A stretch of 43,474 nucleotides of DNA from the NCBI GenBank assembly GCA_002269645.1, contig NIVC01003663.1:1-43474 (forward strand), written 5' to 3'. The notes under the pieces are model-generated. The model saw nothing but the letters and a program-made list of their open reading frames with translations. It had not been told where the DNA came from and did no database searches. The translations under genes and the position numbers were made by a program. Below, one piece after another: positions 7,908 through 36,600 of this stretch. Each line of letters starts with the position of its first letter. Position 1 is the stretch's first letter. Source of the DNA: Macrostomum lignano. Its lineage: Eukaryota.

Positions 7908-7977
7908 GCTGTTGTTGAAAAATCGCTGAGTCACTGTAGCACTCTTGCGCTCACTGCTTGATTTTACTGTGATTTTG

Positions 7978-8811: not shown

Positions 8812-9082
8812 TAAAACAATTCTAATTTAGTTATCAATGCGCAGAGGCTCATACATAAAGAGAAAGACAGAAAATTATTGAGTAAAAGGACGGCTTATAA
8901 AAAACAGGTGAAAATTGGTATGGATAAACAAGGTAATTTAAACAGTAGTTTACCTTTTTATAATAAGCAACAACAATTTAAAAGGCTTGTCTTAAATTTT
9001 TAAATGACTCGATAAAATTAGTTTAGAATGAACTTCCAACTGAGTTAATCACGTGTTAATAATTAGTTCCTGCATTAATCAA

Positions 9083-10829
9083 TCACCCATTCCAATAGAG
9101 GCGTCGAAACGCATCATTGCTGTCGATCAGGGCACTGAAGCTGCTCGGGATGCTGGAAGAATTGAAGAACCAGCAGTCGTTCCTAGAGGCTTTGAAGAGA
9201 ACGTGCGAGCAGCTCGGCTGTATGAGGAATTTTGAGCACTTGATGATGCACTCAGTTTCCGAACGCATCTTCAATGGAGCAGTAGTCAGAAGGCTGTTTG
9301 ATGTCGAGGAGAAGCTGGGTTGGATCTCCGTAGCTACGACAGTGGTGGAATCCGGGTCTTCTGGAACGTTGTGGACAGCTCAGTAACTTTACAATTTAAC
9401 TACACCTAACTTTCATTATTCATAAATTGCTCAAACCTGCAAATATATCAATCTCGCAGAAATTGAGATAATAATTATTAGTGGAGATCCCAGTGATATT
9501 CCTGGAAACCGCCACGTATCGACCCGTCAGCGGTGTTGGGCAGGTGAAGTTAATCGGGTTGTCAGCATCTGTGATAGCGCCGGTCTTGTACGCACACAGA
9601 CTGAAGTTGCTCAATTTGAAGTCAGTCCACACTGACTCAACCGATGAAACGCCTGCAGGTGCGATCAGTTTTTATTGTCAAGGGCATTTTAATAAATCAA
9701 TTAGATTTTCAGCTACTAATGTCTTTATTTACTTATGCTGATCTGCGTGAATCGCGTCTCAAAACTGCTGTCCAGCCTGTTCCAGACTCGCACTCCAGCA
9801 ATGCGATAGTTCTGCAGCAGGTCCAGCATCCACCAGGGCAGCGGATCGGCCGCATTAGTGCAGATGCACTGCACGCCACTGATGTAGTTACCGTGGGTGT
9901 TGCCATCGTAAGCCAGAGCAGCTGGTCCGGATGAACTCCACTTTGTTGACATCTTTGCTGGCATACCTTTTTGAAGGCTATAGGTTTTTCCTAGAATGTA
10001 GGGATAGCTTGCTTCAACAATGATAACTACCACAAAGTGGTTTAGTTTGTAAAGGGAATTGGGCGACAATCAGGCACATTCCGCTGACTTCTGAGTGGTT
10101 ACACACGCTGGCACAGGCTCTCACAGGATACACAATTTATCCCAAAAGCCCAAAACAGCATGGAATCGAACCCAAGTTTCCTGGAGCGAGAGTCAGACGT
10201 GTTTACCGCATTTAGCATTTACGGACCCGTGTTATCAGAGATGTTTTAAACCGCGTATTCAATATATTTAATTTTTTATTGCAGGCTTGATTCAGGGGCA
10301 GAAATGCCAAAGGTTCAGATCGTGTGCACCTGTCTGACAACCAGAAAGTCAAAGGGCCATTTGCCTTTCCGTTGTGCGGGGTGCACTGACGCCCCTAACG
10401 GGCCAGGATGTGCAACCGACAGCTCAGCCGCAGCTATTGCGTGGGGCATCTGAAGGCTGCGTACGGCTGTTCAGTCCAAGGACTCGGGGGTCGCCACACA
10501 CACCCTCAATTACCCCAGCTAATGCTGGCACTCATTCAACTGCTGGGTGAACTGAAGCAATGCGGAGTCAAGTGGCTTGCTCAATAAGTCAAGAATCGAA
10601 CCCCCGATGATCTTTCAGCCGTGAGTCCGAAGCTCTAACCACTAGGATAACAAGATAAAGTCTTACATTGTACCAACTCTTTGTGTAAGTATCTTTGTGT
10701 AAATGCGGAGTTAAAGGACGCCATGAAAAAAAATAATTAAACTACTATAAAAGATGCACTGAACTCACCTTCAAGGCAGCGACAAAAAATACTCAGGAAA
10801 ATAGTGAAAAGCAGTTGTAGCTTCTCCAT
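9083..10829 (-). CDS. Secreted F-type lectin (fucolectin-like) + Ser/Thr linker + PAN/apple-like domain, 4 exons, about 270 aa
   Basis: Exons 10769-10829 (signal peptide MEKLQLLFTIFLSIFCRCLE, GTGAGT donor), 9733-9990, 9437-9652 and 9083-9360. All junctions are phase 1 with AG acceptors, 813 nt in total. FTL motifs: ALAYDGN, PWWMLDL, VRVWNRLD, GRYVAV, LNFCEIDIF. C-terminal SETECIIKC..CSHVLF..CWFF is PAN-like. The last exon is the least certain. Confidence 0.82.
10075..10225 (-). mobile_element. tRNA-derived SINE-like head remnant in lectin intron 1
   Basis: Minus-strand B box GGTTCGATTCC (10162-10172) with a degraded A-box-like segment about 40 nt upstream. Confidence 0.45.
10265..10650 (-). 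mobile_element. tRNA-derived SINE with a CORE-like central domain
   Basis: Minus strand: A box TAGTGGTTAG (about 10636-10645) and B box GGTTCGATTC (10593-10602). These are followed by TTGAGCAAGCCACTTGACTCCGCATTGCTTCAGTTCACCCAGCAGTTGAATG, which resembles the CORE consensus TTGGGCAAGTCACTTAACCTCTCTGAGCCTCAGTTTCCTCATCTGTAAAATG, and an A/T-rich tail. Confidence 0.65.
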
Positions 10830-11063
10830 TTCTTAGAATGTTGATCAATCTGAGACTGATGGTTAGAGGAACTGCAAATTGTGTAGAGAGCCGCTGGGCT
10901 GCTCAGGCGAAAAGATGATTCGAATGGGAATTTAAAAGCGTCCCAAACACCCAGCAAAAACTTCTTATTCCTTTGTTCAACAGCACCTTCTCTTCCTCAC
11001 TAGCTAGGCTAAACAATACCTGCGTTTGCTCAACCACTCTGCCTTTCTTTTTCTGTCTCTCTG

Positions 11064-11106
11064 TTTGGCCTGACGAATAACCCAGAGGCTTGAAACCGGT
11101 TGCAAA
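11064..11106 (+). ncRNA. Degenerate minimal hammerhead ribozyme motif (5' pLTR copy)
   Basis: CTGACGA (11070-76), GAAA (11092-95), palindromic ACCGGT, then GTT. Stems I and II carry mismatches. Confidence 0.55.
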
Positions 11107-13402
11107 GTCAATACGTCGTGACCTCTCTCTCTCTCTCTCTCTCTCTCCTCTCTCCCCCTTTACCGGGAAATCAGTGAAGGAGGTTCCCCAGACTTAGAAG
11201 TGATGAGTGCAACTTGTTTGTGCTTGAGAACCAAAAACTGGTGGAGGATTTGACAACGGTACAGGTCAAAGGCAACCTAGAGGTACCAGAGACCAGAGCG
11301 ATTCAGGGGCTCAAGCGAACAGCTCCGTCGTGATAAAAAAGGCGGACAAAGGTAACGCAGTGGTCATCATGCACCCTAGGGATTACGAATTTGCAGCCTA
11401 CAACCAATTGCTTGACACTAATGCCTATCAACAGCTGGACTAGCCACTGCAACCCGAGACTGCGGAAATGATTAGGGGGATCTTCCTCGATTTATGTAAC
11501 AGAAAGTTCATAACTAAGAAACAGTTTTCTTTTCTTTGCCTTGGAGAGAACTTCTGTCCCCGGCATTTCTACCTGCTCCCAAAAAATCACAAGGACCCGG
11601 CCACCTCGCTGATCCACTTCCGGGTCCCAGCAGACAGACCTATTGTTAGCCCAAGCGCAACCCACTTTCGTTAAGGACTCCTATGACTTCAAAGCACACC
11701 TTATGGATAAAAGCTGCACGGAAGGTCCTTGCTCTGGCAACTTTTGATGTCCAGAGTCTGTACTTCATGATCCCCACAGACCACGTCGTTGCAGCGATCC
11801 AGGAATTCTTTAATCGACTCCCAGATCCCATTGGACCGGATGCTGAGATAATAAAGCTACTGGAACTGTGTTTATACAGGAATGACTTTGAATTCGACAA
11901 AATGATTTTTTACAACTTAGAGGCACAGTCTCGGGGCGCATAATTGCGCCCAGCTATGCATGTCTCTTCATGAGCCTCTGGGAGGAAACTGCCCTGAGAA
12001 CTGCTCTTTATAAGCCGAGCATCTATTCTAGGTACATAGATGATCTTTATTCACTGGGACCACCTGACTGAAGCTCTGACAGAATTTGTTCGACACCTGA
12101 ATCCCATCAACCCCAACATTAAACTCACAGTCAGCTCCTCATCGACTGAGGCCAGTTTCCTTGACATGACCATCAAGAAAGCTGAAAACCGCTTCACAAC
12201 ACAACTGTTTTCGAAAGAAACAGACACTCACAGATTGTTGCACCGACAGCCCTTCCATCCGTCACACACCTTCAAGGGGGTAGTAAAATCCCAAGTCCTT
12301 CGGTACGCCCGTATCTGTGATGACTACAAGTCTTTCAACGATGCTTTCAATTCTTTAAAATCGGAACTCAAGCAATTAGGCTACTCGAAGATTTTTCTTA
12401 GAAACTGCAAAAAGGAGGTCCTCAAACTCATGAACTGGACTGCAGGACCAATGACCAATCTGGGTCTGCTTCCCAAAGGGTTCCATCCCTGTGGGTCATC
12501 CCGCTGCAAATGCTGCACCCACTCACTGCATGCTCTCTCCGCCCAGGGACTGGGACCGGCTTCCGGTTTTTTAATCTCCCAGAGCCTGTCCTGTGGCTCC
12601 AAGAACATCATCTATGGCATCTCCAGTAACCAGTGCCACCCTGGGAAAATCCTCTATGTAGGTATGACTAGAAGAACAATGAGAGATAGAATGAACCAGC
12701 ACAGGTCAAATATTAACAGGAGAGTCTTTACTTCGGGGTCAGAGCACTTTCTCACCCCCAATCACTCGATTTCAAACTTTGTCACTATTGCCATTGAACA
12801 GGTTCTTAATAACAACAAAATCGAACTAAGGGTAGAAATCTGGATTGAAAAAACTGGGGACTGACAAACCGCCGGGTACGAACATCAGGGTTGACAATCA
12901 GATCTTCTCCGACCCATCCCACTGGTCCTTCCTTTTCACCCATCTACGGTCTGGCTCGCCAACGAGATTGCTAAGAACTTTGATAAACTGCAACACAAAC
13001 CAGGCTCCCGCATTCTGCCCGCATTTACACGGCAACGAAATTTACAGAGCCTCCTGGCTCCCAATAAGTCTAAGTCTCAGCCAGGAAACCAATGAATCAT
13101 TTTACCTATGGAACTACAATATTTATTCACTTTGTCCTTTATTTTATTCAAATTTCTTGAATTCAAGACTTCAAAAAATTCTTCAATACCTGCATTTCAT
13201 TTAATCGTATAGTAACTTTGAAAAAACAATTTTTAATATACTGCCGCCTAAACTTACTGGTTGAAAAGCCTCTGGGACAAGATAGAGCTAAACTGAACAG
13301 GGTTTTTAATGTACATCCTTCATATGTACAGCTGCTCATCAATTTTATCAGACTGAGAAAAATGATACTTTAAAGGCCAACTTGCATTGCACATTGATTT
13401 TT

Positions 13403-13440
13403 GGCCTGACGAAGAGCCCAGAGGCTTGAAACCGGTAGCC
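13403..13440 (+). ncRNA. Minimal type I hammerhead ribozyme (3' pLTR copy)
   Basis: GGC-CTGACGA-A-GAGCC-CAGA-GGCTT-GAAA-CCGGTA-GCC. Catalytic core intact; stem I GGC/GCC; 5-bp stem II; palindromic loopless stem III ACCGGT; cleavage triplet GTA (13435-37). Matches the known PLE hammerhead type. Confidence 0.85.
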
Positions 13441-13482
13441 CATATCGCTCATACTATCTTTTTAACACGCCGTGACCTCTCT

Positions 13483-13499
<17 letters not shown>

Positions 13500-13516
<17 letters not shown>

Positions 13517-13800
13517 ACCCCTCTCTCTCTCTCTCACTCTCTCTGAGGGAGGCATTCACTTCAACTGATGCGGAGTATCGGCGGGCTGCAGTCTTAGAGA
13601 TACAATAGTTTTCATCTTGCAGAGGCCCTGCTTTAAAAACGTAGTCTTGAGGTTGCTTAAGTTTCGCGTGCAGAGCCTGGCCTTTTGTTTCCAAAAATTC
13701 TTTGCTCACCCGTGACGAGTGACGCGTGACGTGGCATTTTGTTGAAGCAGCACCATAAATAATTCATCTGGTGTTTCTACGCTTCTCACTCCGGGCACTC
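13500..13800 (-). pseudogene. Possible pogo/Tigger (CENP-B-type HTH) transposase remnant
   Basis: Across frames: DEL/YLW..LVTGE/EFLETKGQALHAKLKQPQDYVFKA, loosely like the Tc5 HTH consensus. Two or more frameshifts are needed. Confidence 0.3.
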
Positions 13801-13950
13801 CACCGCAGTCACTCTTCAGAGCTTGAACTGAAATCTTGAAGGCAGGCAGGGCAAGCACATGCTTTTATTCTGTACTTGTAGAAGCCAATCGAAATAAGTT
13901 GCAGTAAAAAAAATTACTAAATTGAGAAATTTCACAATTCAACAGATAGA

Positions 13951-14123
13951 CTAATAGACATCAGATGAGGCACAAGCGCTCACTAATAGACAACAGATGA
14001 GGCACAAGCGCTCACTAATAGACAACAGATGAGGCACAAGCGCTCACTAATAGACAACAGATGTGGCACAAGCGCTCACTAATAGACAACAGATGTGCCA
14101 CACAAGCGCTCATTTATAGACAA
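13951..14123. repeat. 32-bp minisatellite CAGATGAGGCACAAGCGCTCACTAATAGACAA, about 5 copies
   Basis: Read directly. Confidence 0.95.
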
Positions 14124-14246
14124 CATGGGAAAATATGCTCCGATGGGCAAAGCCTCATCCAGGAGTCAGCCTCACCTTCTTTCGGAAAAGTATACACCGC
14201 TTTTGTAGTTGCTGGTGCAGCCTGCAATGCAATACTTCGTCGGCAT
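14120..14246 (-). pseudogene. Frameshifted THAP zinc-finger-like remnant
   Basis: ATG at 14246: MPTKYCIAGCTSNYK, then a shift to AVYTFPKEGEADSWMRLCP-SEHIF. This carries the THAP pattern C-x-C...FP...W...P..xHF in shortened form. Confidence 0.5.
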
Positions 14247-15030
14247 CTTGTATAACTCGATTGAATTTGAAGCAAGAAAAGATTCAGATAACGCAGAAAA
14301 GTTAGCTGTTTGCTCTTAACTAGACTTGCAGGCTATCATGCTACGCTGCTATGCGAAATGACTAATGGGATTGGCCCTCATGGCTGTAAATCGCACGACA
14401 ATTCTGTAACCCTTCGATTTTCAGATGAACTGAAAGGCTCATTCGTTGCCATGGAGACGCAGCCCATCTTCTCGTCGACAGCTACAACCAGCCGTCTAAT
14501 CGCTGCTCCTTTAAAGCTTTCGGAAATCTATTGCAGCATAGAGTGCTCAAAAGTGCTCAAGTGCGCTTACTTTCTGTTTAATTACTCAATCAAAGAATGC
14601 TGGCTATTGTAAGTTTCCAGCATCCGTAGCAGCTTCATCGATGCGCTCAGCAGCAGCAACGAGGCGGAGTTTTTCGAAATAAACAGCGCCTATAGGAAGC
14701 GAGCACAATAAAAAACAAACTATTAGCGAAAACTACTGAAAGCATTTCTATGAATGGTCTTATTTTAAGGTTAAAATTTCTTTGTTGCCTTTTAGATGAA
14801 GTGGAAAAATTTCGCAACAACTTGAATATTTTCTAAGAATCGGCTTCTTTTTTAACAAAAATTATTTAAAGATTAGTTTTTCTCACTTGAACAACTCAAA
14901 AAAATAATATTTAATAATAATGCAGATTTATTGAAAATAAATAAACTGACTATCGATAAGTACGTATTGAAATTTTGGATTGGTTTTGAGTTTTTTCGCG
15001 TTGTTTTTAGACGTGTGCATTGAATGTGAA

Positions 15031-17708
15031 GAAATCTCAGGGTGAGGAGGGAATCTCAGGATGAGGGAATCTCAGGATGAGGAGGGAATCTCAGGGTGAG
15101 GGAATCTCAGGGTGAGGAGGGAATCCCAAGATGAGAAGGGAATCTCAAGGTGAGGAGGGAATCTCAAGATGAGGAGGGAATCTCAGGGTGAGGAGGGAAT
15201 CTCAGGATGAGAAGGGAATCTCAGGGTGAGGGAATCTCGGGGTGAGGAGGGAATCTCAAGATGAGAAGGGAATCTCAGGGTGTGGAGAAATCTCAGGATG
15301 AGGAGGGAATCTCAGGGTGAGGAGAGATGAGAAGGGAAGGGAAGGGAAGGATGAGAAGGGAAGGGAAGGGAAGGATGAGAAGGGAATCTCAGGGTGAGGG
15401 AATCTCGAGGTGAGGAGGGAATCTCGGGGTGAGGGAATCTCAGGGTGAGGGAATCTCAGGGTGAGGGAATCTCAGGGCGAGGGAATCTCGGGGTGTGGAG
15501 GGAATCTCAGGGTGAGGAGAGAATCTCTGGGTGAGGAGGGAATCTCAGGATGAGGAGGGAATCTCAGGGTGAAGGAATCTCAGGGTGAGGAGGGAATCCC
15601 AAGATGAGAAGGAAATCTCAAGGTGAGGAGGGAATCTCAAGATGAGGAGGGAATCTCAGGGTGAGGAGAAAATCTCAGGATGAGAAGGGAATCTCAGGGT
15701 GAGGGAATCTCGGGGTGAGGAGGGAATCTCAAGATGAGAAGGGAATCTCAGGGTGTGGAGAAATCTCAGGATGAGGAGGGAATCTCAGGGTGAGGAGAGA
15801 TGAGAAGGGAAGGGAAGGGAAGGATGAGAAGGGAAGGGAAGGGAAGGATGAGAAGGGAATCTCAGGGTGAGGGAATCTCGAGGTGAGGAGGGAATCTCGG
15901 GGTGAGGGAATCTCAGGGTGAGGGAATCTCAGGGTGAGGGAATCTCGGGGTGTGGAGGGAATCTCAGGGTGAGGAGAGAATCTCGGGGTGAGGAGGGAAT
16001 CTCAGGGTGAGGAGGGAATCTCAAGATGAGGAGGGAATCTCAAGGTGAGGAGGGAATCTCAAGATGAGGAGGGAATCTCAGAGTGAGGAGAAAATCTCAG
16101 GATGAGAAGGGAATCTCAGGGTGAGGGAATCTCAGTGTGAGGAGGGAATCTCAAGATGAGAAGGGAATCTCAGGGTGAGGAGAGAATCTCAGGATGAGAA
16201 GGGAATCACAGGTTGAGGAGGGAATCTCGGGGTGAGGAGGGAATCTCAGGATGAGGATGGAATCTCAGGGTGAGGAGGGAATCTCGGGGTGAGGAGGGAA
16301 TCTCAGGGTGAGGGAATCTCGGGGTGAGGGAATCTCAGGGTGAGGGAATCTCGGGTGAGGAGGGAATCTCAGGATGAGGATGGAATCTCAGGGTGAGGAG
16401 GGAATCTTGGGGTGAGGAGGGAATCTCAGGGTGAGGGAATCTCAGGGTGAGGGAATCTCAGGGTGAGGAGGGAATCCCAGGGTGAGGGAATCTCGGGGTG
16501 CGGAGGGAATCTCAGGGTGAGGAGAGAATCTCGGGGTGAGGAGGGAATCTCAGGGTGAGGAGGGAATCTCAGGATGAGGAGGGAATCTCAAGGTGAGGAG
16601 GGAATCTCAAGATGAGGAGGGAATCTCAAGGTGAGGAGGGAATCTCAAGATGAGGGAATCTCAAGGTGAGGAGGGAATCTCAAGATGAGGAGGGAATCTC
16701 AGAGTGAGGAGAAAATCTCAGGATGAGAAGGGAATCTCAGGGTGAGGGAATCTCGGGGTGAGGAGGGAATCTCAAGATGAGAAGGGAATCTCAGGGTGTG
16801 GAGGGAATCTCAGGGTGAGGAGGGAATCTCGGGGTGAGGAGGGAATCTCAGGGTGAGGAGAGAATCTCAGGATGAGAAGGGAATCTCAGGGTGAGGGAAT
16901 CTCGAGGTGAGGAGGGAATCTCAGGGTGAGGGAATCTCGGGGTGAGGAGGGAATCTCAGGGTGAGGGAATCTCGGGGTGAGGAGGGAATCTCATGATGAG
17001 GAGGGTATCTCAGGGTGTGGAAGGAATCTCAGGGTGAGGAGAAAATCTCGGGGTGAGGAGGGAATCTAAGGGTGAGGGAATCTCGGGGTGAGGAGGGAAT
17101 ATCATGATGAGGAGGGAATCTCAGGGTGTGGAGGGAATCTCAGGGTGAGGAGGGAATCTCGGGGTGAGGAGGGAATCTCAGGGTGAGGAGAGAATCTCAG
17201 GATGAGAAGGGAATCTCAGGGTGAGGGAATCTCGAGGTGAGGAGGGAATCTCAGGGTGAGGGAATCTCGGGGTGAGGAGGGAATCTCAGGGTGAGGGAAT
17301 CTCGGGGTGAGGAGGGAATCTCATGATGAGGAGGGTATCTCAGGGTGTGGAAGGAATCTCAGGGTGAGGAGAGAATCTCGGGGTGAGGAGGGAATCTAAG
17401 GGTGAGGGAATCTCAGGGTGAGGGAATCTCGGGTGAGGAGGGAATATCATGATGAGGAGGGTATCTCAGGGTGTGGAGGGAATCTCAGGGTGAGGGAATC
17501 TCGGGGTGAGGAGGGAATATCATGATGAGGAGGGTATCTCAGGGTGTGGAGGGAATCTCTGGGTGAGGAGAGATTCTCAGGATGAGGATGGAATCTCAGG
17601 GTGAGGAGGGAATCTCGGGGTGAGGAGGGAATCTCAGGGTGAGGGAATCTCGGGGTGAGGGAATCTCAGGGTGAGGAGGGAATCTCATGATGAGGAGGGT
17701 ATCTCAGG
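15031..17708. repeat. 2.7-kb G/A-rich satellite of 17-20-bp units (GAGGGAATCTCAGGGTGAG and variants)
   Basis: Read directly; internal block duplications with offsets of 473 bp and 330 bp. Confidence 0.98.
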
Positions 17709-17897
17709 CTGATTACCGAAGTAACATCCATTTCTTAAGTCTCAAGGCATTCGAAATAAAAAAGAGAATAGCTTCGCTCATTGAAACGATATTTTTCACT
17801 CATAAAGTGCATAACCGCAAAGTACATTTTGCGCTGACCTTTCTGTATTTTTTACGAACTTTTGCCACCACATGAATAATGTAATGCTTTAAAAATG

Positions 17898-20470
17898 CTA
17901 TTTAAACTTTTGCGACTTCACAAGGCCAGCCCGGATGCCAGACTTTTCACCCGAGTAGCGATTCACTTCCGGTCGAACTTCCGGCACCTGAGATCGACGT
18001 TTAATCATAGCTTTACGGAATTTGTCGCGCAGTTTCACGCGAGGATTGCTGTCACCCGGCTTGGCTTTCTTGCCGCCGCGAGGCCGGCGCTTGTGCAGAC
18101 GCACCGGCAGGTTCTTCTGCATCTCCCAGTAGATCGGGCGATGCTGCTGCTGCTGCTGCTGGCTCGTCTTGTCGTCGACGGCTTCTTCTTCTTCTTCTTC
18201 TTCAACAGCCGCCTCCAATTTAATTTTTCCAGATTTTTTCGATGACGATTTCTTATTAACACTACTGCTAGTAGTACTACTGGGGTTGGAGCTGATATCG
18301 ACTAAATTGCGTGTCGCATCTTCAGCTTGGCGAAGCAGTCGACGAATCGGATGCCGATGCAAGCCAGCCGACACAGTCGGATCTGCTCGCATTCTCAAAT
18401 AGGCGCACAACAATATATAGTGCCATTTGAGCACAGCCTGCTCATCTGTGAGCTCGGATTCCGCTAGGCCAACTAACGGTTTGAGTCTGTTCTCTAGTCG
18501 AGTCTTCTGCTCGTAGGCGCGTCGCATGTCGGGCCAACGGTTTGAGTCGCTTAGCAACAGGTGCTGCTCCAGAGACACACCCGGCGGCGGCCTCTCGTAG
18601 GCGGGCAGCTCAGTTGCCAGACGGACCAGCTGCTGCTGCTGCTGCGGTCGCTTTTTCAACGACTCTTTAGACGACAACGCTGTCGATGCGGCAGCAGTCG
18701 CCGATGTCGACGACACCGACGAAGGCAAATCCGACGGCAAACCGACGCCTAGTAAACGACGCCGCAGTCTCTCTCGTTCCTCGCGCATCAGCCTGGCCGT
18801 GCTGGCGTCTTCGCCACCTTCTATATCATCGTCTTCCTCTTCGCCGTCGGAGTCGCCTGCCGCGTAGCGATACCGTCGCGACGTCGACCACTGCCGGTTG
18901 GCCAGCTGCTCCTCGCTGTCTTCTTCTTTGTCTGCTTCGTCGTCGTCCACCAAATCTTCGGCGACCTCCTTGCGAAATTTTTGCAGCCGGGCTCGCTTCA
19001 AGATGTCGCGATACTGACCGACCATCTCGTCATCATCGTCTGCGGAGTTATCGGAGTCCAGGCCCACCGGGAGCAGCTCGGCGGCTGGCTGTTTGACTCG
19101 ACTTTTTCTGGACGCCTCCGCATGGCGGGACAGCTCGTCCAGCAGGATCTGGGCGGGTTTGGGGAATTGTGAATTTTGTTGGGTACTGAATCCTCCATCA
19201 GTGCTTGAGAATCTGGCTCTCCGCTCCCTCAGTGCTTGAGAATCTGCCTCTCCGCTCCTCCCTCAGTGCTTGAGAATCTGCCTCTCCGCTCCTCCCTCAG
19301 TGCTTGAGAATCTGCCTCTCCGCTCCTCCCTCAGTGCTTGAGAATCTGCCTCTCCGCTCCTCCCTCAGTGCTTGAGAATCTGCCTCTCCGCTCCTCCCTC
19401 AGTGCTTGAGAATCTGCCTCTCCGCTCCTCCATCAGTGCTTGAGAATCTGCCTCTCCGCTCCTCCATCAGTGCTTGAGAATCTGCCTCTCCAGTCAATCA
19501 GTGCTTGAGAATCTGCCTCTCCAGTCAATCAGTGCTTGAGAATCTGCCTCTCCAGTCAATCAGTGCTTGAGAATCTGCCTCTCCAGTCAATCAGTGCTTG
19601 GGAATCTGCCTCTCCACTCCTCCCTCAGTGCTTGAGAATCTGCGTCTCCAGTCAATCAGTGCTTGAGAATCTGCCTCTCCAGTCAATCAGTGCTTGGGAA
19701 TCTGCCTCTCCGCTCCCTCAGTGCTTGAGAATCTGCCTCTCCGCTCCCTCAGTGCTTGGGAATCTGCCTCTCCGCTCCCTCAGTGCTTGAGAATCTGCCT
19801 CTCCGCTCCCTCAGTGCTTGGGAATCTGCCTCTCCGCTCCCTCAGTGCTTGAGAATCTGCCTCTCCGCTCCCTCAGTGCTTGAGAATCTGCCTCTCCGCT
19901 CCCTCAGTGCTTGGGAATCTGCCTCTCCGCTCCCTCAGTGCTTGAGAATCTGCCTCTCCGCTCCCTCAGTGCTTGGGAATCTGCCTCTCCGCTCCCTCAG
20001 TGCTTGAGAATCTGCCTCTCCGCTCCCTCAGTGCTTGAGAATCTGCCTCTCCGCTCCTCCATCAGTGCTTGGGAATCTGCCTCTCCGCTCCCTCAGTGCT
20101 TGAGAATCTGCCTCTCCGCTCCCTCAGTGCTTGAGAATCTGCCTCTCCGCTCCTCCATCAGTGCTTGGGAATCTGCCTCTCCGCTCCCTCAGTGCTTGGG
20201 AATCTGCCTCTCCGCTCCCTCAGTGCTTGAGAATCTGCCTCTCCGCTCCCTCAGTGCTTGAGAATCTGCCTCTCCGCTCCTCCATCAGTGCTTGGGAATC
20301 TGCCTCTCCGCTCCCTCAGTGCTTGGGAATCTGCCTCTCCGCTCCCTCAGTGCTTGGGAATCTGCCTCTGTGCTCTAAAGGTGGGTAAATTAACATTACC
20401 AGCATGAAAAAAGAAGGCTCACCTTATCCTGATCCGCTTCAAAGTCGCGCTCAGAATCGCTTGAGTCGGC
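17898..20470 (-). CDS. UTP3: UTP3/SAS10 (SSU processome component), 2 identified exons, about 430 aa
   Basis: Exons 20423-20470 (ADSSDSERDFEADQDK; TTTTTCAG acceptor, GTGAG donor) and 17898-19148 (ILLDELS...), phase 0. Acidic N-terminus, central Sas10/Utp3/C1D-like region (..HRHPIRRLL), and C-terminal Sas10 domain NPRVKLRDKFRKAMIKRRSQVPEVRPEVNRYSGEKSGIRAGLVKSQKFK. The start is either ATG 20488 or a spliced-leader AUG. Confidence 0.92.
19199..20369. repeat. 31/34-bp minisatellite (CAGTGCTTGAGAATCTGCCTCTCCGCTCCCT) filling the UTP3 intron
   Basis: Read directly; it occupies about 1170 of the 1274-nt intron (19149-20422), with zoned unit variants. Confidence 0.98.
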
Positions 20471-21063
20471 CTGAAAAAATGATTTCATATACGGATATGC
20501 TCAAACAATACTTAAATACGAGTATCTCGTAGTTACATACTAAGCCATATAATATATCGATCTCAATGTTGTAAGGATATACCTAGTTTACTCAAACTAG
20601 AAAAAAATACTAAAAAGTCAGATTAACTTGAGTTATAAAAGTAGTAATTTCAATTTATTTTCTATTTAATTTAATATACACGTGCACAGGCAGTTCTAAA
20701 AGTAAGGTAAAGTGACTTTTACCTAGGTGACCCTAGCTCTACCTACCTAACTAATGATACTGTATCTGTCTACAATTGAAGGATAATGTATATGGTATTT
20801 AGCATGGTTATATATTCTATCTATTCTGAATTAATATCACAAATAGTAGTTGAGTAAGACGCAAAAAACCGATTGAAACGATGAAATTAAAGAACTACAG
20901 GAAATGAAAAAAATTGTAACTACAAATATTGTAAAATAGAAGCTACAGAAGTTTCAAATCGTCAACGGTTTTATCTAAACTGCGTAGCAACTAAAAACCA
21001 AGACTGGAAGTGAATCAACCAAACTTTGGAAACCGAATAAAAACTGGGGCAACAAAAAAGCAA

Positions 21064-21861
21064 TAAAGATCGGAAGCTGCTCAACACTAAGACCGGAAGC
21101 TATTCAAGACTAAGACCGAAAGCTGCTCAACACTAAAACCGGAAGCTATTCAAGACTAATACCGAAAGCGGCTCAACAATAAGACCGGAAGCTATTCAAG
21201 ACTAAGACCGGAAGCTGCTCAACACTAAGACCGGAAGCTATTCAAGACTAAGACCGGAAGCTGCTCAACACTAAGACCGGAAGCTATTCATGACTAAGAT
21301 CGGAACCTGCTCAACAATAAGACCGGAAGCTATTCATGACTAAGATCGAAACCTGCTCAACAATAAGACCGGAAGCTATTCATGACTAAGATCGAAACCT
21401 GCTCAACAATAAGACCGGAAGCTATTCATGACTAAGATCGGAGCCTGCTCAACAATAAGACCGGAAGCTATTCATGACTAAGATCGAAACCTGCTCAACA
21501 ATAAGACCGGAAGCTATTCATGACTAAGATCGAAACCTGCTCAACAATAAGACCGGAAGCTATTCATGACTAAGATCGGAACCTGCTCAACAATAAGACC
21601 GGAAGCAATTCATGACTAAGATCTGTACCTGCTCAACAATAAGACCGGAAGCTATTCATGACTAAGATCGGAACCTGCTCAACAATAAGACCGGAAGCTA
21701 TTCAACAGTAAGGCCGGAAGCTATTCAACAGTAAGACCGGAAGCTATTCAAGACTAAGACGGAAAGGTGTTCATGACTAAGACCGGAAGCTACTAAAACA
21801 AAGACCGGAAGCTATTCATGACCAAGAGCGGGAGCTATTTATGACTAAGACTAAGACTAAG
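21064..21861. repeat. 46-bp (2 x 23-bp) higher-order tandem repeat between the NAXD-like gene and UTP3
   Basis: TAAGACCGGAAGCTATTCA(A/T)GAC alternates with TAAGA(C/T)CGGAA(G/C)CTGCTCAACA(C/A). Confidence 0.96.
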
Positions 21862-21896
21862 TATTACAAATTATAATAGCTAATAGCAAACAGCAG

Positions 21897-22307
21897 TCAA
21901 TGCAGACAGTCGGCCTCAGGAAACAGCCGGCAGAACGCGGCTCCGATCTGTTCCACCGTGTCGGCCGCTATGGTTGCCCGCCTACGCGAAGCAAACGCTT
22001 GAGCTGCGCACCGTCTGGCCAGTGCGGCGGCTGCGTAAGCGGCTAGCAAAGCCGGATGACGCAGCATCGGCAAGTTCGCGCTACTACTCACAGTAGTATT
22101 ATTAGTAGTAGCAGTACGACCATCGGCGGCCGAGAAACACCAGTGAGAGAACACCAGCGCTAGGCCGGCTAGCAGGGCGCCCTGGCCTGAGCAGCGGCGG
22201 GAGCTGCCCTGCGTGTGGGGAGACGGGGGGCGGTTGCGGAGATTCGAACTCGCGACCTAACTAGGTGAAGAAGAGAACTCTGTCTACTTATCCATCTATC
22301 TATCTAC

Positions 22308-22346
<39 letters not shown>

Positions 22347-22404
22347 CCTACCTATCTATCTATCTATCTTTCTATCTATCTATCTATCTATCTTTCTAAT
22401 CTGC

Positions 22405-22451
<47 letters not shown>

Positions 22452-22481
22452 CCTATCTATCTATCTAATCTGCCTATCTGC

Positions 22482-22568
<87 letters not shown>

Positions 22569-22582
22569 ATCTGCCTATCTGC

Positions 22583-22656
<74 letters not shown>

Positions 22657-22665
22657 GTCTATCTT

Positions 22666-22721
<56 letters not shown>

Positions 22722-22841
22722 CCTATCTATCTATCTATCTAATCTGCTTATCTATCTATCTATCTATCTATCTACCTATCTATCTATCTATCTATCTAAT
22801 CTGCCTATCTGCCTATCTATCTATCTATCTATCTAATCTGC

Positions 22842-22888
<47 letters not shown>

Positions 22889-22889
22889 C

Positions 22890-22950
<61 letters not shown>

Positions 22951-24618
22951 CACCAATTTATCTATCATTCTACGATCTTGTATTTATATATTTATACAAT
23001 ATCTACCTTTGCCTATTTTAAGGTTAAGCACGGCTGGCAGCGGTTAGTACCTGTCTACGTAGGCTAAAAAACTCAAAACCTCAGGACTAGATTCGGATAA
23101 AGAAATAATCCTTAAGCTTAAGCACAAAGTTCCCCATCAGCTCACCTGCAGGGCGCATACTTCAGAATGATTATCAGACCCAGCCCCAGCAGCCACAACA
23201 TCTTCGCGACCTTTCAAAAGAATACAGACACCGCCAAGAGCTGCGGACAGTCGGCCAGCGGACGTCGGTGTCGAAGATGATGACGAAGCAATAGGTGGAG
23301 TCTGCGACTCGCAGAGCTGGCAGAATTCCAACCAGTTTGGCGTGAGAATGACGCGCTGGTTGCCACGGATAAGATTTGGATTCCGCGATACGGCTACCAG
23401 TGCGGACTGAAGGCGGCGTTTCAAATATGTCAATATTTCTATTTTTAAGCATCCATGACGTAACTAAACCAGCAGAAAAAAGGTCAACTCACCCCATCAA
23501 TTACAAGCGGCTGATTGAGAGCTTGAGCAGTTTCTATAGCCTGAATTAGACAGGGAAGATGGTGGGTGTTATTAAGGCATTGAGAACGGCGATTCTTGAG
23601 AAGGACTAGGGAGATTCTAAAGGGATTAAATGCAATTCAATAGAGGGGATAGGCAGTTCTAGAGAGGGGATTAAGGGAGATTCTATTGGGGGATTAAGGG
23701 CAATTCTAGAGGGATTAAGGGAGATTCTATAGAGGGGATCAGGGGAGATTCTAGAGAGGGGATTAAGGGCGATTCTAGAGACGAGGATTAAGGAAGATTT
23801 TAGAGACAGGGATTAAGGAAGATTTTAGAGAGGGATTAAGGGAGATTCTATAGAGAGGATAAGGGAGATTCTAGAGAAGGAATAAGGGAGATTCTAGAGA
23901 CGGGGATTAGGGAGATTCTATTGGGGGATTAAGGGCAATTCTAGAGGGATTAAGGGAGATTCTATAGAGGGGTTTAGGGGAGATTCTAGAGAGGGGATTA
24001 GGGGAGATTCTAGAGAGGGGATTAGGGGAGATTCTAGAGAGGGGATTAAGGGCGATTCTAGAGACGGGGATTAAGGAAGATTTTAGAGAGGGGTTAAGGG
24101 AGATTCTAGAGAGGGGATTAAGGGAGATTCTTGAGAGGGGATTAGGGGGATTTTAGAGAGAGGATTATGGGAGATTCTAGTGAGGGGATTATGGGAGATT
24201 CTAGTGAGAGGATTTTTGGAGATTCTAGATTGAAATTAAGGGCGATTCTCAAATCAGTCATTCAGCTACTCACATCAGTTGCCAACTGAATCGAATCCTC
24301 GCTGGAATCGAGCCCAGGACCAACCAATACAGCCTGGCAGCAGTCAGCCTGCAAGCATTGAATCAAGCGCTGCCGTCTTCGACCATTGTCGATGGCTCCT
24401 ACCTCCAACATCGCGGTCGGCTGCGGCCAGCAGCCGCGCAAAGCCGCCGCAGCCGCGGAGTCGGCGCAGACAACCTTCGCCTGATCAGCCCCAGCCCGCA
24501 GGGCAGCCAGCGCGGCCAGATGAGCAGGTCCCGGCTGACTGGCCGAGCCACCAACAATGCAGACGAGTCCGCCCGGATCGGACATGGCCGGGATGCACTG
24601 GGCAGCGGTGCCTACCAT
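21897..24618 (-). CDS. NAXD: Diverged NAXD/CARKD-like (YjeF C-terminal fold) protein, 4 exons, about 321 aa
   Basis: Exons 24274-24618, 23493-23540, 23146-23406 and 21897-22208, all phase 0 with AG/GTGAG sites. Motifs: [74 protein letters not shown]...[11 protein letters not shown]. Orthology versus paralogy is unresolved. Confidence 0.88.
22286..22951. repeat. (TATC)n / (GATA)n microsatellite filling the last NAXD-like intron
   Basis: Read directly; interrupted by TACC and AATCTGCC variants. Confidence 0.98.
23590..24250. repeat. Degenerate 24-26-bp minisatellite (GGGAGATTCTAGAGAGGGGATTAA) filling NAXD-like intron 1
   Basis: Read directly. Confidence 0.95.
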
Positions 24619-25284
24619 CGAATACTTGGACTACTGTGCTTAAGAAGTGAGTTTGTTGTCATCAAGCCAGATGCGAGTTCTACCCTGAAGTGCTCCGCAT
24701 TATGCAGCAGAGACCGGCGCTGTCAGGCGTTCAGCCTGGCTGACGGTCCGTGCCAGCTGTTCGTGTTCGACAAGTGCAGCAAGTCGGTGAGGAACTGCGG
24801 CTGCTCCAGGAGAGGCCGGGTGTTTGTGAAGCAGCAGCCGGGACTCGAGGCGGGCGCGCTGTGTCCGTCTGGCTACGGAGACGACCTGTGCGGAGTGAAG
24901 TACAAGCTGTTCAACGACTCAGGAAGTTGGAAGCAAAGCAGAGAAAAGTGCGAGTCGGAGAGCGGCCCGGTCATCATGGCAGATGTGGTGGACGCTACCG
25001 AGATGCACCATATTGAGATGCTTCATGCGAAGTACAGTTTTGGCAAGTCGTTCTGGCTCGGCGGTTTCCAGACTGAGGACAGTGCAGAGCCGCTCGAAGG
25101 CTGGCATTGGATTGCCTGCAATCTTGAGGTGGCCAGAACTCTTTGGAGTCAATCGGAGCCAAGCAACACGGGAAATGACGAGAATGTGATTTTGCGATGG
25201 TCAGCCAATCCGAATCTAAGTGACGGACGCATGGAAATGAATGAAGTGTCGGCCGGTCTGTGCGAATGCGTTTTTCCGTTTTAA
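24520..25284 (+). CDS. PAN/apple-like + C-type lectin-like protein; 5' end unresolved
   Basis: PAN-like STLKCSALCSRDRRCQAFSL..PCQL followed by CTLD CPSGY..YKLF..SWKQSREKCES..MADV..FWLGG..WHWI..WSQSEPSN..EN..LCEC. The only upstream in-frame ATG (24520) lies inside NAXD-like exon 1. Confidence 0.8.
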   Translation: MSRSRLTGRATNNADESARIGHGRDALGSGAYHRILGLLCLRSEFVVIKPDASSTLKCSALCSRDRRCQAFSLADGPCQLFVFDKCSKSVRNCGCSRRGRVFVKQQPGLEAGALCPSGYGDDLCGVKYKLFNDSGSWKQSREKCESESGPVIMADVVDATEMHHIEMLHAKYSFGKSFWLGGFQTEDSAEPLEGWHWIACNLEVARTLWSQSEPSNTGNDENVILRWSANPNLSDGRMEMNEVSAGLCECVFPF

Positions 25285-25646: not shown

Positions 25647-26347
25647 ATTGATGGTTTAAAACTTGTACATAGTAATCAATTTTTTGATACAGTATTGGTT
25701 GGGCAAAGTGCATATCAGTTTCAAGCCAGTCCGGTCATTGACAAATCAGCTAAAAAATTCTGAGTTGACGGCTAGCCCCACCCATCGCAAGTTGGTTATT
25801 TAACGTGGGCTGTTTGGTCTTAATGTACAGGGCTTCTAATAGGCAGAGCATGTGATCTCTATTACAAAAATCAATAGCCTTTATCATTTCGTGTGGTTCA
25901 GCCTCACAACAAGAATTGCAGGTTAGCAGGTGTTCGTTAATAGCAGAGTTTTTTAGCCAGTGCTCTCTGACCCTCGTGTATAAGTGTCGTTTAGTTTTTC
26001 CTATGTAGGAGATGCTCTGGTCCTCAGAGCAAACAAATTTATACACGACACCAGCCGCGAGAGGACGTGGAACACTGGATTTCAACTTGCAGACAAACTT
26101 AGCAATCTTCTCGGTGCGAAACACAACACGGATTTGAGTGTTTAAGTCTTTACGGAGCAGCTTTTCTAACTTCTTTTTAAACTCTATAGCTCTATAAACC
26201 AACTTGCGATGGGTGGGGCTAGCCGTCAACTCAGAATTTTTTAGCTGATTTGTCAATGACCGGACTGGCTTGAAACTGATATGCACTTTGCCCAACCAAT
26301 ACTGTATCAAAAAATTGATTACTATGTACAAGTTTTAAACCATCAAT
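25647..26347 (-). mobile_element. 5'-truncated Penelope-like element (GIY-YIG end) with an inverted copy of its 3' end
   Basis: GIY-YIG GVVYKFVC..SYIGKTKRHLYTRVREH..INEH..LLEALYIKTKQPTLN. A 151-bp perfect inverted repeat spans 25647-25797 and 26197-26347. Confidence 0.92.
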
Positions 26348-33671: not shown

Positions 33672-36600
33672 CGATGAGTAGTTGAGAGAATTGCTCCTCA
33701 TCTGAGGCAGCCTCCTGCTCAACAATTGTATCCTTTGGCAGCCCGTCAACATACAGAATGTAGGAGCTTGGCATTCTTTAGATTGGGCGAGTTGGCGTTG
33801 GTTACAGTGAGTTAGTCTTAAATTGTAGCATTCTGTGAAGAGTTTCCCCACTTGCAATATGGGTTCCTATTTTCGTTTTTTTCTATAGCCGTCCTGCATC
33901 TACATTGGACGGTAGGCTGGCTGTTCGAGAATTCCCGAGGCTTAATAAACTAGTTAACTTTTTCAAAATTGTTTTTGAAGATTAGGAGCGTTCTTCCTAA
34001 TGCGAAAGAGTACCATTTTCTGTCAAGAGGTGGAGAGCACACTGGTCATGAGGAGGAGAGCACACTGTTTGGTCATGAGGAGGAGATCACACTGTTTGGT
34101 CATGAGGAGGAGATCACACTGTTTGGTCATGAGGAGGAGATCACACTGTTTGGTCATGAGGAGGAGATCACACTGTTTGGTCATGAGGAGGAGATCACGC
34201 TGTTTGGTCATGAGAAGGAGATCACACTGTTTGGTCATGAGGAGGAGATCACACTGTTTGGTCATGAGGAGGAGATCACACTGTTTGGTCATGAGGAGGA
34301 GATCACACTGTTTGGTCATGAGGAGGAGATCACACTGTTTGGTCATGAGGAGGAGATCACACTGTTTGGTCATGAGAAGGAGATCACACTGTTTGGTCAT
34401 GAGGAGGAGATCACACTGTTTGGTCATGAGGAGGAGATCACACTGTTTGGTCATGAGGAGGAGATCACACTGTTTGGTCATGAGGAGGAGATCACACTGT
34501 TTGGTCATGAGGAGGAGATCACACTGTTTGGTCATGAGGAGGAGAGTACACTGTTTGGTCATGAGGAGGAGATCACACTGTTTGGTCATGAGGAGGAGAT
34601 CACACTGTTTGGTCATGAGAAGGAGATCACACTGTTTGGTCATGAGGAGGAGATCACACTGTTTGGTCATGAGGAGGAGATCACACTGTTTGGTCATGAG
34701 GAGGAGATCACACTGTTTGGTCATGAGGAGGAGATCACACTGTTTGGTCATGAGGAGGAGATCACACTGTTTGGTCATGAGAAGGAGATCACACTGTTTT
34801 GGTCATGAGGAGGAGATCACACTGTTTGGTCATGAGGAGGAGATCACACTGTTTGGTCATGAGGAGGAGATCACACTGTTTGGTCATGAGGAGGAGATCA
34901 CACTGTTTGGTCATGAGGAGGAGATCACACTGTTTGGTCATGAGGAGGAGAGTACACTGTTTGGTCATGAGGAGGAGAGCACACTGTTTGGTCATGAGGA
35001 GGAGAGCACACTGTTTGGTCATGAGGAGGAGAGCACGCTGTTTGGTCAATAGGTGGACGCGTGTGCCATTGTGACTGATGTGTTAAGGGATCTGACCTAG
35101 AGTTTAATTTTGTCTATAACTCCAACTAATCTTGATACAACTAGCTGTCTCTGTACACAGAAAGCTGCAATTGGCAATCTGAAATTTACTTGCTAATGGA
35201 AACCGAGTGCCATCCGGTATCGAACTGGTAGAGCTGACGCCTCGACTGGACCACCTGACCGTCGCTGAACTCTACCGACAGGTGTCCGGAAAAGCGATCA
35301 ACGGTCAGGTGCAAATACCGGTCTCCATAGGAGCCCAGACCGGGCCCTCCGAGCAGCAGAAGAGTGGCCAATCTCGACGCGATACCATCAAAATTGGACG
35401 CCAGTTTTGCGTAGAAATGAACTCGGAATGACAATGAGAAATTTGATGTGCTCAAACTGGAACAAATCATATATATTAAATGGCTAAGGTGCATTTAGAG
35501 TCGAACATAAAATAGACTGTCAATTAGCTACAAAAGGCAGTTCACACGAATCAGCTTCCGTAATAAGAGGTCCCAAACCGTCTAATGATTAAGTTCTTCA
35601 TAAGTCGCAGGTGCGAGTTTTACAATGACGCGGTGAGAGAAACATGAAGCTTAAAAAAGAGGCTCTTCTACACTCAAAGGAGCAGCGCATATGGTTTTGC
35701 ACAATGGCTGACAGAAAGACGGCTGTTGTTAATAGTTAGAAAAAATGTAGCTAGCTATTATAGAATGGACGGCTTAAAACTTCCTTAAATAAAGTAAGAT
35801 TCTTGACTCTGCATTTGACTCAGCTCTGCTGCTGACAATGCAAACATGAGCACGTCGTATGGCGTTTTGTCTATTTTTTTAAATAGGCACACCAACTATT
35901 TTGTACTAAGCGTGTGTAGGTTGTGTGTAGATTGCTTCGCGCAGAAGTGGATCAAGACTTTGTGTTTAGTTCAGCATCATCCAGTGTCTCTCCATGCTGC
36001 TTTGTCATCCAGTTTCAAGCCCTGTTGTTGTTGAGTTAGCATCATAGCCAGCAAGGTGGCAAGCAGTCATGCCTATTCGGTTGTCCCTGAACACACACAG
36101 GAGCATATTACCCTTCCCAGGAGCATATTACCCTTCCCAGGAGCATATTACCCTTCCCAGGAGCATATTACCCTTCCCAGGAGCATATTACCTTTCCCAG
36201 GAGCATATTACCCTTCCCAGGAGCACACACATACGCTCACACGCACTGCAACATTTATTTGTTGATCTGGGGCTCTGTCTAGAAGGGTTTAATTTGTTGC
36301 TGCTCATAATTTTTCTGAATGTTTCTCGTGCTGCCAGTACAATTTTTTTCACTGCTTTTTCCGTTCGTCATTTGCAGTTGTTTCTCTTGCATCCTTCATA
36401 GTGCATCATTTTGTATTTTACAAAATCCTGAATCCCGATCTAGAATGGAACTCACCTGTTCATTAGCGCTGGACTCTTGTACAACAGGTAGCCTCGACCT
36501 CGAAATCTCGGCGCACTGATGTGGCGCTTGTCTCGGTCTGGGCGGAATGATGTGAGATCGAGTTCTTTTTCGACAAGTGCTCGAGTTCAATTATTTGTTT

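Follow-up and report, generated by a model that had tools for sequence, protein, structure and literature searches.

Introduction

Where does translation begin in a gene whose annotated coding sequence opens directly behind a splice acceptor, and does such a gene share a transcript with its upstream neighbour? Both questions are raised by the UTP3/Sas10 gene of the flatworm Macrostomum lignano, as found on contig NIVC01003663.1 of assembly Mlig_3_7 (GCA_002269645.1). The window analyzed here is this whole contig, 43,474 nt in length; positions refer to its forward strand, and UTP3 and the NAXD-like gene next to it both lie on the minus strand. M. lignano uses one 35-nt spliced leader (SL), CGGTCTCTTACTGCGAAGACTCAATTTATTGCATG, and the motif [T/C]TNCAG is enriched at its SL acceptors (PMC8629364). 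A preliminary description of the locus had proposed that UTP3 is the downstream cistron of a trans-spliced operon and that the AUG at the end of the leader may start the protein. It had noted that flatworm leaders end in AUG, and this holds for M. lignano, whose leader ends in …TTGCATG (PMC8629364). Flatworm SLs ending in ATG are able to supply the start codon, and their use as initiator is established (Cheng et al. 2006, as cited in PMC12582326). We propose here that UTP3 is SL trans-spliced and translated from the leader AUG, and that co-transcription with the NAXD-like gene is plausible.

Results

The UTP3 gene and its protein

UTP3 consists of two exons. Exon 1 (20423..20470, minus strand) has 16 codons, ADSSDSERDFEADQDK, is in phase 0 at both ends and leads into the donor AAG/GTGAGC (slashes mark splice junctions throughout). 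Exon 2 (17898..19148, minus strand) holds 416 codons and a TAG stop (17900-17898) and encodes the Sas10 C-terminal domain. The intron between them (19149..20422, minus strand; 1274 nt, GTGAGC...CCCAG) is made up nearly entirely of a 31-nt tandem array (19193-20369, ~37 copies). The GenBank coding sequence (CDS) spans 17898-20470 on the minus strand, equivalent to 10001-12573 of the reversed range 7898-30470. It is 5'-partial, and its start is the first base of exon 1. The protein, PAA50344.1 ("hypothetical protein BOX15_Mlig025692g6, partial"), begins ADSS…, and comparison of the spliced translation with protein entries returned 100%-identical sequences from M. lignano.

In Pfam, the Sas10 C-terminal domain PF09368 is found in the protein with E=1.6e-16, while the Sas10/Utp3/C1D domain PF04000 gave no match at E<0.01. 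A search of the PDB matched the C-terminus with human UTP3 in the small subunit (SSU) processome structure 7MQ8 (E=8e-11). As evidence on the N-terminus this search is useless and was set aside, its alignment covering the C-terminal domain alone. The N-terminus was instead judged from an alignment of 15 Sas10 proteins. Here, DFEADQDKILL, which runs across the exon 1/exon 2 junction, aligns with DAFHADRDKILL and DKFHANQDKLLL in other animals, and its DF..DKILL corresponds to D.FHA..DK.LL, the conserved N-terminal Sas10 motif. The residues SSDSE just before it align with an acidic Ser/Asp patch of the other Sas10 proteins. With the C-terminal domain and the N-terminal motif both present, the gene is, as judged from its sequence, the UTP3/Sas10 gene of M. 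lignano.

A probable spliced-leader acceptor in front of UTP3

UTP3 exon 1 is preceded by ATCATTTTTTCAG, with its G at 20471, and we confirm that the exon starts from this acceptor in phase 0. The acceptor TTTTTTCAG (20471..20479, minus strand) has TTTCAG at 20476-20471 behind a T6 tract and fits [T/C]TNCAG. Within the 1426 nt that separate it from the stop codon of the NAXD-like gene, the motif occurs only twice (20476-20471 and 21009-21004), and the UTP3 site alone abuts coding sequence. An upstream UTP3 exon was not found here either: the Mlig_3_7 annotation shows none in any copy of the gene, and no consensus donor GT[GA]AG is present on the minus strand of this gap. Weak GT donors may exist, and one of them, at 21907, is used by a chimeric gene model described below. 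Exon 1 opens in phase 0 with GCC, which puts the SL ATG in the frame of the UTP3 open reading frame (ORF), and the predicted product MADSSDSERDFEADQDKILL… agrees with the earlier translation. The junction would read GCAUGG, a strong initiation context with G at -3 and G at +4. The next Met on a trans-spliced UTP3 mRNA lies in …DDDDEMVGQY, ~40 residues beyond the DF..DKILL motif, so that the SL AUG is the sole start that retains the Sas10 motif on such an mRNA.

The same boundary is annotated in the paralogous copies of the locus. A 5'-partial UTP3 CDS that starts directly after the acceptor and encodes ADSS… is present in all three copies, that is in the window, in NIVC01001426.1 (L002) and in NIVC01001186.1 (L003), and the copies are named Mlig008641g3, Mlig025692g4 and Mlig025692g6. 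For the Mlig_3_7 annotation the SL was trimmed off RNA-seq reads, the reads were mapped, transcriptional units were cut by TBONE at the resulting peaks, and ORFs were called by TransDecoder (PMC5730564). All SL trans-spliced transcripts of M. lignano were annotated via such SL-read peaks (PMC8629364). A 5'-partial CDS that runs from the first base after a consensus acceptor is therefore what this pipeline is expected to yield for an SL-spliced mRNA with an ORF open at its 5' end. Control 5'-partial CDSs, taken from the canonical NAXD gene and its neighbours on two other contigs (L004 and L005), start 0, 1 and 2 nt after TTGCAG, TTCCAG and TTCCAG. The UTP3 protein entries comprise three GenBank and three UniRef models, none of them transcriptome-derived, and the identifiers Mlig025692 and Mlig008641 found no mention in the papers and supplements searched.

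A probable trace of the leader in the assembly

One of the copies carries a sequence change at the acceptor itself. In L003 the acceptor reads …ATCTTTTTTCATG/GCCGAC, compared to …ATCATTTTTTCAG/GCCGAC in the window and in L002, or, in a shorter view, …TTTTTTCATG/GCC compared to …TTTTTTCAG/GCC in the other copies. The change lies at L003:9997-10000, equivalent to window 20474-20471. A second site of this kind is L005:1729-1732, at the control acceptor of the gene upstream of canonical NAXD, which is TTCCAG/A in L004 and TTCATG/A in L005. At both sites positions -4 to -2 have turned to CAT, and the last four bases are those of the SL 3' end. Beyond the CATG, the 595-nt unique part of the gap in front of UTP3 differs in three columns alone between the copies.

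Pilon polishing of the assembly drew on both RNA-seq and DNA reads (PMC5730564), and we read CATG as a trace of this polishing. The simplest explanation is that SL-bearing RNA-seq reads probably overwrote the acceptor in one copy during polishing. If this is right, the CATG is evidence, at the level of sequence, for reads that join the SL to GCCGAC at the UTP3 acceptor. An older ML2 gene model that carries the LPVYER variant of the L003 type starts with FFQADSS, i.e. with TTTTTTCAG, in better agreement with an artefact than with an allele. The alternative, that CATG at the UTP3 acceptor of NIVC01001186.1 and at the acceptor of NIVC01001159.1 represents real germline alleles, in which the SL end including its ATG was copied into the genome by mRNA-templated conversion, is very improbable. 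If it were true, a trans-splice acceptor would have become a cis-encoded start codon, which would offer genes a route out of SL dependence.

In the mechanism that we propose, the UTP3 pre-mRNA would be SL trans-spliced at the TTTTTTCAG acceptor ending at 20471, and the 35-nt SL would be joined to GCC at 20470. The mature mRNA would read …TTGCATG/GCCGACTCAAGC at the junction, and the terminal AUG of the SL would act as initiator. All sequence above 20471, including a genomic ATG at 20488 and two minimal upstream ORFs, would be removed as outron. The anatomy of UTP3, its reading frame, the annotated boundary and the conservation of its motif are plain observations. Based on the annotation method and on the CATG trace, SL trans-splicing at 20470 is very likely. 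The SL AUG is likely the main UTP3 start. An SL RNA gene was not found in the window or in loci L001-L003 with up to 5 mismatches allowed, and no Rfam family scored above its threshold anywhere in the window.

The gap between the NAXD-like gene and UTP3

UTP3 is the same-strand neighbour of the NAXD-like gene, and the distance previously given as 1.4 kb proves to be 1426 nt from stop codon to acceptor (20471..21896, minus strand). This would-be outron or intercistronic region consists of repeats and AT-rich sequence, with no opposite-strand gene and no ORF reaching 90 aa. It contains a 46-nt tandem array (21066..21850, minus strand; 785 nt, ~17 copies) that varies in copy number among the paralogous copies; the gap of L003 measures 1844 nt, that of the two others 1426 nt. 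Repeats are known to inflate operon spacers in M. lignano, and operons have been defined in this species by subtracting the repeats and asking for a remainder of <1 kb and an SL-spliced downstream gene (PMC8629364). The repeat-adjusted gap is 1426 - 785 = 641 nt when counted from the stop codon and would be shorter from the true 3' end; this places the pair under the 1-kb limit.

Two further observations give hints of co-transcription. A chimeric and frameshifted ML2 model, P0003 (UniRef A0A1I…), maps to window 24665-18018 and runs from the NAXD-like 5' untranslated region (UTR) through the exons to the UTP3 C-terminus, with a jump from ~21908 (donor ACT/GTCTGC) to 20470. In a flatworm-wide study, chimeras are described as by-products of polycistronic pre-mRNA, and SL acceptors as widely shared with cis-splicing (PMC12582326). 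P0003 is named "Protein kinase domain-containing protein" in UniRef, a name to which its sequence gives no support. We also note an 8-mer, GGCCGACT, that occurs twice on the minus strand, at 21913-21906 in the final part of the NAXD-like CDS (GAGGCCGACTGTCTG) and at 20471-20464 across the acceptor (CAG/GCCGACTCAAG); the repetition is probably a coincidence and could confuse spliced alignments. The second observation concerns gene names, the prefix of which derives in Mlig_3_7 from the transcriptional-unit cluster (PMC5730564). The UTP3 copies are numbered g3, g4 and g6, and the clusters therefore hold more genes than the UTP3 copies, consistent with multi-gene units. Transcription of the outron would most likely begin at the NAXD-like gene or farther upstream. 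In that case the pair would be an SL-resolved operon of two genes, its spacer inflated by repeats. A gene with a DUF1308 domain located upstream in L002 was considered as a third link ahead of the NAXD-like gene and rejected: the gap of ~3.7 kb contains ~1.9 kb of tandem repeats and leaves >1 kb, outside the published limit. A search for the name of this gene, made to test the idea of a g1/g2/g3 series, gave no match.

The NAXD-like gene and its truncation

Four exons, all in phase 0 and on the minus strand, make up the NAXD-like gene and are joined at GTGAG donors and CAG acceptors. In its present form in the contig, exon 1 spans 24274..24618 and is homologous to the other copies only up to 24611; exons 2 and 3 (23493..23540 and 23146..23406) are followed by exon 4 (21897..22208), with a TGA stop at 21899-21897 and GQGALLAG in the place where the family has GGQGD.L.G. 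The protein contains the Carb_kinase/YjeF_C fold PF01256 (Pfam, E=4e-30) of NAXD, the ATP-dependent NAD(P)HX dehydratase, and its identity to the canonical paralogue Mlig026390g2 is only 40%. All three copies of the gene nevertheless keep an intact frame and intact splice sites. The motifs HKG..GR, EYTGAPYF, DADGL and GGQGD.L.G, which the other four aligned family members keep, are absent from it, and it carries SGQGALLAG (Asp to Ala) and a deletion relative to the family. Because these family motifs are lost, the protein is, as far as sequence can tell, probably not an active dehydratase, and it is possibly a pseudoenzyme or the product of a young pseudogene.

The preliminary description had placed the start of this gene at the ATG at 24618, which we find not to be native. 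From ~8846 to 24611 the window is 99.2% identical to L002, and homology ends at 24611. L002 and L003 go on upstream with ATGTCGTGCACT… and have the native start MSCTLLTSDLLLSTAAQC… (MSCTLL…), an acceptor-like site TTTTACAG ~100 nt further up and then a 23-nt tandem array. Since homology to the copies stops at 24611 and the sequence above is unrelated, the ATG at 24618 arises at the junction. The breakpoint in exon 1 (24611..24612) is either a real duplication boundary, at which a ~15.8-kb duplicated segment ends, or a chimeric assembly join. In this contig the first 13 native codons of the NAXD-like gene are missing, together with its 5' UTR and promoter. The 5' end is intact in L002 and L003, and the operon arrangement is better represented by these copies, NIVC01001426.1 and NIVC01001186.1, than by the window.

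Weighing the operon against other readings of the UTP3 5' end

The combined explanation, in which UTP3 is SL trans-spliced, starts at the SL AUG and forms a two-gene SL-resolved operon with the NAXD-like gene, is the one that we favour with moderate confidence. For co-transcription with the NAXD-like gene, taken by itself, the case is plausible and about evenly balanced. The earlier proposal of a downstream cistron holds in part: the 1-kb adjusted distance, the fused model P0003 and the gene numbers speak for it, and it stays at the level of the plausible, with a NAXD-like gene in the window that has no native 5' end.

The best surviving alternative keeps SL trans-splicing and the SL AUG and makes UTP3 monocistronic, with a promoter of its own in 20471-21065 or in the repeat array, a short outron and the NAXD-like gene as a mere neighbour. 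We consider this possible, if rather unlikely. Several points weigh against the operon, and a number of them favour this alternative directly. About 60% of those M. lignano genes that are SL trans-spliced have no operon assignment, and the gap of 1.4 kb is far above the mode of operon spacers, which is ~100 nt (PMC8629364). The unique part of the gap (20471-21065, 595 nt) is 70% A+T and may be the UTP3 promoter, and TATA-like strings are seen by eye in this stretch. The NAXD-like gene is absent from the GenBank proteins for all three copies, has lost the catalytic motifs and, going by its sequence, may be decaying or weakly expressed. UTP3 is annotated in the window copy despite the loss of the NAXD-like 5' end and promoter, and of the 5.8 kb of upstream sequence in L002 and L003, which includes the native NAXD-like start, none is found anywhere in the window.

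The polyadenylation signal on which the operon proposal had relied belongs among these points. The AATAAA is present at 20659-20654, 188 nt ahead of the acceptor, as part of a cluster that contains the only canonical hexamers of the gap (20654..20675, minus strand), the others being ATTAAA at 20675 and 20670. In a 595-nt stretch of this AT content, ~0.5 AATAAA and ~0.7 ATTAAA are expected by chance, and because their frequency equals chance the hexamers carry little weight; we therefore rejected the AATAAA as significant operon evidence. These signals also lie ~1.2 kb past the NAXD-like stop, compared to ~50 nt for the AATAAA at the control locus, and to serve the NAXD-like gene they would need a repeat-filled 3' UTR of ~1.25 kb. 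Conservation of the gap is uninformative, because its unique part is >99% identical among the three copies. The argument from g-numbers leaves the owners of the missing numbers unnamed, and the 5'-partial CDS proves no more than an annotated transcript start at the acceptor. A monocistronic UTP3, however, has to be reconciled with a repeat-adjusted distance of at most 641 nt, below the published cut-off, with the chimeric ML2 model that spans both genes, and with the numbers g3, g4 and g6, which imply that further genes were cut from the same transcriptional-unit clusters. The annotation of the window copy is no proof of its expression either, since at 99% identity RNA-seq reads align with more than one of the copies.

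Improbable, by comparison, is a conventional UTP3 that is transcribed from slightly upstream of 20488, escapes trans-splicing and starts at the genomic ATG (MKSFFQADSS…). This in-frame ATG (20486..20488, minus strand; MKSFFQ-ADSS...), named as a caveat in the earlier work, is indeed present at 20488-20486 and is usable only on non-trans-spliced RNA. Its frame is kept in all three copies, in L003 via two compensating 1-nt changes, and ML2 models begin with FFQADSS, 9 nt upstream of the acceptor. These models, however, are without a Met and hence give the ATG no support. Its context, with T at -3 and A at +4, is weak, an in-frame stop (TGA, 20503-20501) shuts the genomic frame five codons above it, and two further ATGs, those of the minimal upstream ORFs ATGGCTTAG and ATGTAA, lie just ahead. 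The residues KSFFQ are a translated polypyrimidine tract plus CAG. Moreover, the GenBank CDS begins at 20470 and is 5'-partial, as expected only if the transcript was cut at an SL site, and the CATG trace in L003 equals the SL 3' end.

Least probable of all is that 20471 serves mainly as a cis acceptor for an unseen upstream UTP3 exon or for the last NAXD-like exon (GT donor at 21907), giving a longer N-terminus or a fusion transcript. In its favour, the part ahead of DF..DKILL, ~9 residues long here, comprises 30-50 residues with a basic stretch in most Sas10 homologues, P0003 uses the junction 21908/20470 exactly, and sharing of SL acceptors with cis-splicing is frequent in flatworms (PMC12582326). 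Against it, the gap lacks a GT[GA]AG donor, the donor ACT/GTCTGC of P0003 is weak, P0003 itself is shifted in frame over its whole length and may be a fusion predicted ab initio, and no copy has an upstream exon in Mlig_3_7, whose annotation is based on RNA-seq.

Surrounding sequence

Head-to-head with the truncated NAXD-like exon 1 lies a cysteine-rich ORF (24690-25284, plus strand; …RCQAFSLADGPCQLFVFDKC…FWLGG…WHW…), which has no Pfam match and resembles PAN or C-type-lectin domains by eye only. Transposable elements are found on both sides of the NAXD-like/UTP3 pair. They include a BEL/Pao long terminal repeat (LTR) retrotransposon at 2458-7934 on the minus strand (Peptidase_A17, RVT_1, rve, DUF1759/1758/5641) and a long interspersed nuclear element (LINE) at 39604-43058 on the plus strand (Exo_endo_phos_2, RVT_1, RNase_H). 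ORF fragments of the GIY-YIG type, possibly Penelope-like, occur at 25750-26331 (minus strand) and 12040-12864 (plus strand). Besides the arrays in UTP3 intron 1 (31-nt x37) and in the gap (46-nt x17), tandem arrays were located at 15033-17712 (19-nt x147), 22289-22966 ((TATC)x168), 23608-24229 (24-nt x27) and 34043-35048 (27-nt x37). These very large arrays, in introns and intergenic DNA, account for extreme swings in GC skew. In L002, an element of ~300 bp (2480-2785) with terminal inverted repeats, CATACATGCGCAAC…GTTGCGCATGTATG, sits within a (GTCT)n microsatellite between the DUF1308 and NAXD-like genes and looks like a miniature inverted-repeat transposable element (MITE).

Discussion

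The canonical NAXD locus of M. lignano is one of the systems nearest to the NAXD-like/UTP3 pair. Its cluster encodes a 488-aa protein, NAXD and a 71-aa protein on the same strand (L005:1734-9985; L004:1030-9091), and the adjacent L005 genes are confirmed as Mlig022667g2 (NAXD) and Mlig022667g3 (71-aa protein), with a shared prefix and consecutive g-numbers. We regard this cluster as a textbook candidate operon of the species. The locus (Mlig022667 g1-g2-g3 in L005, Mlig026390 g1-g2 in L004) resembles ours in its same-strand genes, repeat-rich gaps, TTNCAG starts and 5'-partial CDSs, and its gaps of 640-960 nt consist mostly of tandem repeats. The two differ in the position of the AATAAA, found ~50 nt after the stop there and ~1.2 kb after the stop in the gap between the NAXD-like gene and UTP3.

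Compared to the SL genes and operons of M. lignano at large (Wudarski et al. 2017, PMC5730564; Ustyantsev and Berezikov 2021, PMC8629364), the locus shows the same SL, acceptor motif, repeat-inflated spacer and boundary annotated at the acceptor, and UTP3 is a conserved housekeeping gene, a class enriched among SL targets. Nothing is different in kind. The spacer (1426 nt raw, at most 641 nt adjusted) lies toward the long end, and the upstream gene is a degenerate NAXD paralogue that is truncated in this contig. Likewise, the use of an in-frame SL AUG by an ORF without a genomic start on the mature mRNA is shared with SL-AUG initiation in flatworms (Cheng, Cohen, Ndegwa and Davis 2006, J Biol Chem 281:733, as cited in PMC12582326; slORFfinder, PMC9851317). 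A difference is that we infer AUG use for UTP3 and that an in-frame genomic ATG, 18 nt upstream in the outron, could serve non-trans-spliced transcripts. With operons of C. elegans, Ciona and Schistosoma the locus has in common a same-strand pair, an acceptor without upstream donor and a poly(A) cluster ahead of the acceptor. In contrast to these systems, no SL2-type leader is seen here, and the spacer of this candidate operon is much longer than ~100 nt and filled with satellite-like repeats.

Earlier papers on M. lignano already describe SL trans-splicing, starts at the SL AUG and repeat-inflated operons, and in the public annotation UTP3 already begins at the acceptor. The locus is an operon candidate of a kind common in this species, and whether it is an operon stands at about an even chance. 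The NAXD-like "gene start" seen in this contig is an artefact of the breakpoint. The SL-derived CATG overwrites apparently affect some acceptors of the assembly and can mislead splice-site and start-codon analyses; probably they are a systematic polishing artefact, which could corrupt acceptor and start-codon calls genome-wide. For the genes of M. lignano, the "partial" CDSs of Mlig_3_7 that begin right after a TTNCAG acceptor would be complete once the SL AUG is added.

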